From sequence record NC_027399.1: DNA of 64,000 nt. One strand, given 5' to 3'. The translations under genes were made by a program, and so were the position numbers. Below the pieces are notes generated by a model. The model was not told the DNA's origin and ran no database searches. It was given only the letters and a program-made list of their open reading frames with translations. Positions within the stretch are counted from its first letter, which is position 1. Every line of letters starts with the position of its first letter. Positions 39,663 to 42,318 of the stretch are shown piece after piece.

Positions 39663-42318
39663 CGATGATTATGATTATGATTTAGATGATGTGTATTCTA
39701 AAATAAAAAAGCCTGGTGTAAAAATCAAATACACCGAATATGAAGAAAAGGAACTTGCTAAATGTGCAGCAGATCCAATTTATTTCATGGAAAACTATTT
39801 TTATATTGTCAGTAAAGGTGGTGAAATATTATTTAAACCTTATGAATATCAAAAAGAAATGGTACGTAACTTTCAAGGATATACTAACAACGTAATGCTT
39901 ACTGCGAGACAAATGGGTAAGCTATTAATTAATAGTACGCCAATTTTAACACCAACTGGATTTTCAACTATAGGTGAATTAAAAGTAGGGGATATTATAT
40001 ATGGTGCTGATGGAAAGAAGACCAAGATTTCATACATTACACCTGATACGCCAGATATGGTATTATATGATATAAAATTTAGTAATGGGGAAACTATTAC
40101 TGCGTGTGAAGATCATTTATGGAATATAAGTACAACAGATTGGCAACGTTGGGGAAATAAAACAAAAACCCTAAGTACTAAAGAACTTATTCCATTGTTT
40201 AACCAGTATCAATCGCGATCAAAACCAGCAAGAATGTTTATTGAACATTGTGAAACTATTGAGTTTGATGAAACATCCACTAATTTTGATCCATATATGG
40301 TTGGTTTATGGTTAGGTGATGGTGATACCAAATCTAATAGGTTAACTCATTCTAAAGATGATTATCTATTTTATAAATCATATTTTAATGATGAAATATC
40401 TGATTATTTAAAAGATGAAAGAAAAAATGATTGTGGATATTCTAAAATTAATTTTGATTTTAAACAATTTATTCGTGATGGAAAAAAATATATACCCGAT
40501 GAATATATTTTTACATCTGTAGAAAATAGATTAAAACTTTTACAAGGTTTGATGGATAGTGACGGTACAGCAGAACGAACTGGAATGTATCTTCAATTTT
40601 TTAATAACAATAAAGATATAATTGATTCATTTAGATTGATATTAAGTACTCTTGGTATAAAAAGTACAGTAGTTGAAAAACAAAAAACATATACTTATAA
40701 AGGTGAAAAGATAAAATCACCAAATATTTCGTATATGGTTCAATTTAAAACTACAAAATATGATATGTTTATGCTTCCAAGAAAATTAGAAAAGCAATAC
40801 TTAAAAGAATATGTTCATCCTAAAAATAATAGAATTTATATTGAAAGTATAACATTATCAGAATCTACTGAAATGGGTCGTTGTTTACAAGTTGACAATG
40901 AAGACCATTTATTCTTATGTGGTAAAACACTAATACCTACTCATAATACTACTGTAGCAGCAGCATATATATTGTGGTATGCGATGTTTAATCCTACTAA
41001 AACAGTACTGTTACTTGGTAACGTATTGAGTACTGCAAAAGAGATTATGGAACGTATTCAATTCGCATATGAATTATGTCCTGATTTTATACGTGATGGT
41101 GTAGAAAAATATAACGTAACTGAAGTTCGTTTTGAAAATAAATCTCGAATTATTGCTCGTGCAACAACACCAAGTGCTGCACGTGGTTTATCTGTAAACT
41201 TATTATACTTAGATGAATTTGCGTTCGTTCAGGAAAGTTTCCAAGCGGATTTTTGGTCAGCAGTATCGCCAACATTAGCATCATCTAATGGTCGTTGTAT
41301 TATTACCAGTACACCAAACACTGAATATGACCAGTTCGCAACTATATGGAATGAATCACAACGTTTTAGTACTGATGATGGTATTGAATTAGATCCAACA
41401 GGTGCTGGTATAAATGATTTTAAAGGCATTATGGTACGTTGGGACTCACACCCTGATCGTACTCCAGAATGGGCTGCAAAAGAAGAATACAAAATAGGTA
41501 CTTCCAGATTTAAGCGTGAATATAACTGTGAATTCGTAACTTATCAGGAAACACTGATTGATGGTATTAAATTATCAGAAATTAAACACAGAACTGTTCG
41601 TGAACCTATAAAGAGAACTGATGATGTGTACTGGTATAAACCTATTGAATATGGAATGACATATGTACTTGGTTTAGACCCAAGTGGTGGTACAGGTGGT
41701 GACGATGCTGCAATTCAGGTATATGAATTACCAACACTACGACAAGTAGCAGAATGGAAACACAACAAAATGCTCATTACTGATCAAGTAAAATTAATGA
41801 GAAAAATTTTAATGCAAATTGCATATGAAATGCAAGAATTGGGTGCCAAAAATATAGAAGATCATCTATTTTGGACTATTGAAAACAACGGTATTGGAGA
41901 AAGTGGTATATTGGCTATTCAAACACTGGGTATTGAAAATTTCCCAGGCACTATGGTTAATGAACCAAGAAGAACCAGAACTGGTAGAATTCGTAAAGGT
42001 ATGACTACTTCAAAATCAACAAAGAAAACTGCCAATTTACATATGCAAAAATTAATGGAAACATATCGAATGGAAGTTGCAAGTCCTAATTTACATAGAC
42101 AATTGACTGATTATATCAGACGTGGTACTGACTTTTTATTTGAAGCAAAAGCCGGTTGTCGTGATGATTTGGTTAGTGCAACACTTCTTGTTGTGAGATT
42201 AATTGATATTATATCCAAATTCGAAGATAATACCGCTGAAGTAATTGGTGAAAGTTTAGATGATTATGATGAAGAATTTTTTGAACCACTTGGATATATG
42301 ATTACATATACAAGATAA
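39649..42318 (+). CDS. gp17: Terminase large subunit, gp17-like, containing an intein
   Basis: ARQMGK|TT Walker A split by an insertion; LYLDEFAFV Walker B; TSTPN; LGLDPSGG; DDLVSA nuclease motifs. Confidence 0.95.
39922..40947 (+). mobile_element. Class 3 intein (342 aa) with a LAGLIDADG homing endonuclease
   Basis: Begins [13 protein letters not shown]; block B TACEDHLW; LAGLIDADG motifs [10 protein letters not shown] and [10 protein letters not shown]; block F RCLQVD..HLF; ends PTHN followed by +1 Thr. Confidence 0.93.

Follow-up and report, generated by a model that had tools for sequence, protein, structure and literature searches.

A predicted class 3 intein beginning with leucine in the Walker A motif of the large terminase of Klebsiella phage K64-1

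How can a phage obtain an active DNA packaging ATPase if the Walker A motif (P-loop) of its large terminase subunit (TerL) is split by an in-frame insertion? The question is raised by a stretch of 64,000 nucleotides (nt) from sequence record NC_027399.1, called here the window and numbered from its first letter. An earlier note, made from the letters of this stretch, had proposed that positions 39922-40947 encode a class 3 intein that starts with leucine and interrupts the terminase Walker A motif. In our tblastn search the flagged gene is a 100% match to the gene annotated as 'terminase large subunit' in Klebsiella phage K64-1, an Alcyoneusvirus belonging to the RaK2-like Klebsiella jumbo phages. 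Judging from sequence comparisons, the K64-1 element is very probably a functional, bifunctional class 3 intein located in the P-loop of the sole large terminase of the phage.

Part of this was known before. RaK2 and K64-1 have already been recorded as having a large terminase with Hint and LAGLIDADG domains (Buttimer et al. 2017, PMC5259590), and in phage terminases the position between Lys and Thr of the P-loop is a classic place for inteins (PMC5050341). In the literature searched we found no statement on the class, the boundaries or the starting residue of the K64-1 intein. That the P-loops of phage terminases can harbour class 3 inteins is well known. As its family tolerates many residues besides Leu at the start, the K64-1 intein is a fairly ordinary addition, and it leaves the understanding of the class 3 mechanism unchanged. 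What it adds is a class 3 intein with good support, found in T4-type terminases of jumbo phages with Gram-negative hosts, among them Klebsiella phages under study for therapy.

The interrupted terminase gene and its splice junctions

The intein comprises residues 92-433 of the TerL precursor and lies between ...ARQMGK and TTVAAA... The TerL of phage 121Q has no intein, and in the alignment it has a contiguous ARQMGKTTVAAA across the insertion point. Because 121Q TerL reads straight through, both splice junctions are fixed to the residue. The 342 amino acids (aa) at 39922-40947 given in the earlier note are therefore exact, and their removal restores ARQMGK-TT as it had claimed. The alignment with 121Q and with T4 gp17 also bears out where it had placed the insertion, namely between the Walker A residues Lys and Thr. 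The same position is occupied in related phages: K64-1, RaK2, JNE01, UE-S1, EJP2 and fENko-Kae01 all have 329-342 additional residues exactly between the Walker A Lys and Thr. We also considered a shifted boundary with an intein starting at Lys and rejected it, as the invariant Walker A Lys would then be lost and the junction is set by 121Q. The features of the gene are listed below.

39649..42318, + strand: TerL precursor gene, 889 aa, T4 gp17-type with an in-frame intein (open reading frame (ORF); Pfam Terminase_6N and LAGLIDADG_3; tblastn)
39649..39921, + strand: N-extein, 91 aa, ending with the first half of Walker A, ARQMGK (alignment with 121Q TerL; 121Q against 3EZK/3CPE)
39922..40947, + strand: predicted class 3 intein, 342 aa, HINT splicing domain with an inserted LAGLIDADG domain (alignments, AlphaFold2 model, Foldseek)
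39922..39924, + strand: Leu1, codon CTA, non-nucleophilic first residue of the intein (sequence; 7 isolates; 4 metagenome runs)
40105..40122, + strand: block B, C62-E-D-H65-L-W67, with Cys62 (B:7), His65 (B:10) and Trp67 (B:12, the W of the Trp-Cys-Thr (WCT) triplet) (sequence, alignments)
40300..40326, + strand: LAGLIDADG motif 1, intein residues 127-135, with the conserved Asp133 (G-D-G nearly invariant in a 75-sequence alignment)
40537..40566, + strand: LAGLIDADG motif 2, intein residues 206-215, with the conserved Asp212 and Asp214 (Pfam; nearly invariant in the 75-sequence alignment)
40876..40893, + strand: block F with Cys321 (F:4, codon 40882-40884), the predicted initiating nucleophile (invariant in alignments)
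40936..40950, + strand: block G, Pro339-Thr340 (G:5)-His341-Asn342 (40936-40947), followed by Thr+1 of the C-extein (40948-40950) (sequence, 120 homologues)
40948..42318, + strand: C-extein, 456 aa, the remaining ATPase domain and the nuclease domain of TerL (Pfam Terminase_6N; PHROG terminase large subunit families)

For the identity of the terminase the N- and C-exteins were searched separately, and the natural intein-less 121Q TerL was used as a stand-in for the spliced form. Pfam Terminase_6N covers residues 1-209 of the C-extein; in the precursor this domain is matched only downstream of residue 434. The 121Q protein aligns through its Walker A motif to the T4 gp17 structures 3EZK/3CPE with an E-value of 1.6e-41, the T4 motif being SRQLGKTT. 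With the Walker A motif contiguous in its intein-less orthologue 121Q, K64-1 TerL is a large terminase of the T4 gp17 type.

Class 3 signature and the expected splicing route

Class 3 inteins are reported to be monophyletic. By sequence they are defined by a non-nucleophilic residue 1, Trp at B:12, Cys at F:4 and Thr at G:5, the +1 residue being usually Thr or Ser (Tori et al. 2010, PMC2807308), and their splicing mechanism has an obligate Cys at F:4 (PMC2807308, PMC5222942). All of these marks are found in the K64-1 intein: Leu1, His65, Trp67, Cys321, Thr340-His341-Asn342 and Thr+1. Variation within the intein family was followed in 120 cluster representatives, nearly all of them inserted at one common G-K | T/S site of T4-type terminases. 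The WCT triplet (Trp B:12, Cys F:4, Thr G:5), which the earlier note had read in the K64-1 intein, is indeed there and is invariant in these 120 clusters, as are His B:10 and the whole Thr-His-Asn. The His and Trp of block B and Cys F:4 are also invariant in the 75-sequence alignment, and the +1 residue is Thr, Ser or Cys in every one of the 120 clusters.

A phmmer search against all solved structures returned three class 3 DnaB mini-inteins at the top: 6RIX (E 1.1e-15), 6RIY (5.5e-15) and 6BS8 (3.5e-13). Both splicing halves of the K64-1 intein align with these solved inteins, with the catalytic Cys and the His-x-Trp in register. Specifically, Cys321 is aligned to Cys124 of Mycobacterium chimaera (Mch) DnaB1 and to Cys118 of M. 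smegmatis (Msm) DnaBi1, and block B is aligned without gaps to Asp62/His65/Trp67 of Msm DnaBi1 (PMC6195587). Class 3 membership, as the earlier note had proposed, is thus backed by the triplet and by top structure matches to experimentally characterised class 3 inteins, and it can be regarded as a well-founded prediction.

The mycobacterial DnaB mini-inteins (Msm DnaBi1, 6BS8; Mch DnaB1, 6RIX/6RIY) are the nearest solved relatives by sequence. His65 and Trp67 carry identical numbers in Msm DnaBi1 and in the K64-1 intein; the block F R-C-x-x-V-D-N and the block G P-T-H-N are common to the mini-inteins and K64-1; and in both cases the insertion follows the P-loop Lys of an ATPase. The mini-inteins differ in having no endonuclease, in having Ala1 and Asp62 where K64-1 has Leu1 and Cys62, and in residing in a helicase and not in a terminase. 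By its published description (PMC2807308), the DnaB intein of mycobacteriophage Bethlehem (MP-Be) is similar to the K64-1 intein in having WCT, a non-nucleophilic residue 1, Thr+1, a LAGLIDADG domain and a length of 341 aa, and in being phage-borne and inserted in an ATPase, but it has Pro1 and Ser at B:7 and its host is DnaB. The TerL1-a P-loop inteins of mycobacteriophages (Kelley et al. 2016, PMC5050341) have the same insertion point in the terminase Walker A motif, after the invariant Lys and before the nucleophilic Thr; their hosts are Terminase_1-type TerL proteins of actinophages, whereas the host gene in K64-1, a jumbo phage of Gram-negative bacteria, is a T4-type (Terminase_6) TerL.

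Class 2 inteins also start with a non-nucleophilic residue, and it could therefore be asked whether Thr+1 hits the N-terminal junction directly, with Cys321 having a merely structural role. The known class 2 inteins are all KlbA orthologues with Cys+1, Asp at F:4 and Ser at G:6 (PMC4031507), whereas the K64-1 intein has the full WCT triplet, invariant in its 120 relatives, and is homologous to proven class 3 inteins. We consider such a class 2-like route very improbable.

By homology to the characterised class 3 inteins, splicing of the K64-1 precursor would take the following course. After translation, Cys321 (F:4) would attack the peptide bond between Lys(-1) and Leu1, aided by His65 and Trp67, giving a thioester-branched intermediate. 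The N-extein would then be transferred to Thr+1, and cyclisation of Asn342 would release the intein. Finally, an O-to-N shift would restore the Walker A motif ARQMGK-TT and give an active packaging ATPase.

The second activity suggested for the element is that of a homing endonuclease domain. Pfam LAGLIDADG_3 spans intein residues 203-258 (E 3e-8). Both LAGLIDADG motifs are intact, as the earlier note had judged: Asp133 and Asp214 are retained, and these residues are nearly invariant in the 75-sequence alignment. An AlphaFold2 model that was based on 75 sequences and covers the intein plus 8 residues of each extein is confident (predicted local distance difference test (pLDDT) 93.9; predicted template modelling score (pTM) 0.92). 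It predicts a double alpha-beta-beta-alpha-beta-beta-alpha fold inserted into HINT, as expected for the endonuclease domain. In a Foldseek search with this model the top match was PI-SceI (E 2.6e-17, template modelling (TM) score 0.66), and TliVMA, PI-PfuI and I-DmoI were also matched; the class 3 mini-intein 6RIY is covered by the model at TMt 0.83. PI-SceI, the yeast VMA1 intein (1VDE/1EF0), is the best whole-model structural match, and it is likewise a bifunctional combination of HINT and LAGLIDADG with the same motif pattern; the pattern of motif 1 in the K64-1 intein is that of PI-SceI block C. PI-SceI differs in being a class 1 intein (Cys1, Cys+1), eukaryotic and 454 aa long, and it is only 14-15% identical to the K64-1 intein. 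The LAGLIDADG domain would act at the DNA level, in the spread of the intein into intein-less terminase alleles or in the exchange of intein alleles between genes.

Leucine at residue 1 and cysteine in block B

An intein starting with Leu may raise the suspicion that its first codon in fact stands for Ala or Cys and was misread in sequencing or assembly, a possibility that the earlier note had named itself. The CTA codon is identical in seven independently sequenced isolates, namely K64-1, RCIP0023 (China), Muenster (USA), W12-3 (Korea), phiKp_21 (Japan), KP13-7 (Israel) and OU509535. The contigs of four independent metagenome runs (two from wastewater, one from freshwater and one from food fermentation) have no variant at this codon either, and Leu1 is present in two further distant lineages. 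Because the same CTA is seen in the seven isolates and the four runs, Leu1 is not a sequencing error; that explanation is refuted and keeps practically no probability. Leu as the intein's starting residue is genuine.

How unusual is Leu1? Among the 120 clusters residue 1 is Ala in 96, Met in 5, Leu, Lys and Ser in 4 each, Arg in 2, and Gly, Phe, Glu and Asn in 1 each. The close orthologues vary as well, with Ala in RaK2, JNE01, UE-S1 and Kae01, Lys in EJP2, Ser in ph0011 and Leu in the K64-1 clade. Followed along a tree of the inteins, residue 1 has changed its letter at least 18 times, and Leu has at least three origins. The statement of the earlier note that class 3 inteins usually begin with Ala holds for this intein family (96/120), but not for the class prototype, the MP-Be DnaB intein, which has Pro1 (PMC2807308). 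Similarly, its description of Leu1 as an unusual variant is correct in so far as Leu is a minority state (4/120), but the position is generally free and Leu arose repeatedly. Since residue 1 varies widely and Leu recurs, the surprise is smaller than the earlier note held. In the sequences compared, residue 1 is the sole loose position, the active site being rigid everywhere else. The class 3 mechanism would predict this looseness: no chemistry is assigned in it to the side chain of residue 1, which can explain both the free drift of the residue and the tolerance of Leu. On the evidence of the alignments, Leu1 is a tolerated minority state without mechanistic novelty.

Some observations may weigh against a K64-1 intein that splices as readily as its relatives. 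Position B:7 is Cys62 (40105-40107) in the RaK2/K64-1 clade and Asp in most class 3 relatives, Msm DnaBi1 included (DxxH to CxxH). In addition, replacement of Pro1 in the MP-Be DnaB intein led to less splicing and more C-terminal cleavage (PMC2807308). Residue 1 can therefore tune efficiency, and by analogy splicing of the Leu1 intein might be slow.

Leu1 together with Cys62, which presumably lies near Cys321, could make splicing conditional: either slow, or redox-gated through a Cys62-Cys321 disulfide, so that maturation of TerL would be timed or sensitive to stress. In the RaK2/K64-1 clade the change from Asp to Cys62 would, on this account, have freed residue 1 for bulky side chains (Leu, Met, Lys) and at the same time created a Cys62-Cys321 pair by which the maturation of the terminase is gated, either kinetically or by redox state. 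Such a gate would modify the class 3 explanation and not exclude it. In Msm DnaBi1, the closest characterised relative, the catalytic Cys is reversibly blocked by a disulfide, and Asp62, to which Cys62 of K64-1 is aligned, adjoins residue 1 in the structure (PMC6195587). Across the family clusters a residue 1 other than Ala is enriched where B:7 is not Asp, being found in 18/30 such clusters as compared to 5/89 of those with Asp. However, this association is no more than a trend once relatedness is considered: with phylogenetically independent pairs the covariation is not significant (about 3 concordant pairs, sign test p ~0.25). We regard conditional splicing of the K64-1 intein as unlikely, and the evolutionary account of the clade, from Asp to a Cys62 gate, as equally doubtful. 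If it were true, DNA packaging would be under post-translational control by the intein.

The natural series of first residues (Ala, Met, Leu, Lys, Arg, Phe, Ser and others) makes a ready-made mutagenesis set, suited to studying how class 3 splicing is tuned by residue 1 and B:7. Such tuning is relevant to intein engineering, for example to traceless cleavage and to the tolerance of junction residues.

Probable dependence on splicing, signs of intein mobility and neighbouring observations

Does the phage need its intein to splice? The GenBank record of K64-1 has a single TerL match in tblastn, and the one Terminase_6N match in the RaK2 record is the intein-bearing gene. From this single TerL locus per genome we infer, as the earlier note had done, that the packaging function of TerL depends on intein splicing. 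For the phage it would mean that an active terminase cannot form without protein splicing.

The reverse case would be a dead, non-splicing remnant with the terminase function supplied from elsewhere. Nothing speaks for it directly; what comes closest is an ORF of 226 aa immediately upstream (38982-39662, + strand), which overlaps the TerL start by 14 nt and carries the RefSeq label 'large terminase subunit'. A Pfam search with this ORF gave no match, and it belongs to PHROG 27915, a family of unknown function. It has been reported in all RaK2-like phages, including the intein-less relatives (Buttimer et al., PMC5259590). Because the ORF lacks a Pfam terminase domain, falls into a PHROG of unknown function and is kept in relatives without the intein, it is not a backup terminase. 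Moreover, the intein is carried by seven plaque-forming isolates, all its catalytic residues are conserved, and each genome has one TerL ATPase locus. A dead remnant is extremely improbable, and a splicing class 3 intein is by far the better explanation.

The K64-1 intein, judged by its sequence, has the traits of an element whose movement or exchange is independent of its host gene. The exteins of K64-1 and RaK2 are ~100% identical in DNA up to both junctions, and their inteins are 79% identical in protein and mosaic. In OU509535 the intein is a recombinant of the two types, with K64-1-like ends and a RaK2-like centre. By tblastn the intein has a sporadic distribution, being present in all Alcyoneusvirus records and in only a few Asteriusvirus records. 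One contig from a wastewater run, whose identity to the extein flanks is ~85%, omits 1159 letters (39878-41038) and has 134 others instead; as the net difference is about the length of the intein, this looks like a diverged intein-less TerL allele in the same sample.

Two of the isolates have changes in LAGLIDADG motif 1 (window 40318-40326): Asp133 to Tyr in phiKp_21 and Asp135 to Asn in KP13-7. They may be an early stage of endonuclease decay, in a lineage with a fixed intein.

In some related TerL genes the Walker A codons themselves are altered. Six independent RaK2-like TerL genes have one additional base there (...CAR ATG C GGA AAA...), namely those of phages A4, EC.P1, Ecwhy_1 and ph0011, of metagenome contig JACCDR010239845.1 and of a 208-kb ENA contig. 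The region is located at 713-740 of the retrieved stretches of the four phages, and at ~1835-1856 (minus strand) and 575-600 in the metagenome contigs. In these genes ARQM is in frame 0, and GK with the entire rest of TerL is in the +1 frame; GenBank annotates them as two fragments. Some of them have the intein and some do not, their flanks have diverged, and both gene parts are otherwise open. Since the flanks are diverged and both parts are intact, the extra base is not a shared sequencing error. At the level of sequence it implies recoding by a putative +1 frameshift, for which there are two options. In the first, the shift would occur at AUG_C while the A site holds the rare codon CGG, and Gly-Lys would be kept. 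In the second, the Lys-tRNA would slip on AAA_A, giving Arg-Lys. TerL of K64-1 itself has no extra base.

Scanning IMG/VR by pattern for the allele with the extra C gave no relevant match, 21/22 matches in a metagenome scan were due to chance, and megablast with an 81-nt piece of phage A4 matched only A4 itself. In the literature searched we found no report of such Walker A alleles. The intein alleles of ph0011 and of one of the metagenome contigs with the extra base start with Ser1 (SLALDT), which resembles the outcome of gene conversion over a short tract, with another intein allele as the donor.

Two minor observations concern the neighbours of TerL. The upstream 226-aa ORF contains a P-loop-like stretch, PRQTGTTT, and is kept in RaK2-like phages with or without the intein. 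Downstream, the ORF at 42356-43636 (+ strand) is annotated as a virion structural protein and has a weak, sub-threshold Pfam match to the C-terminal domain of T4 RNA ligase 1 (E 0.015).

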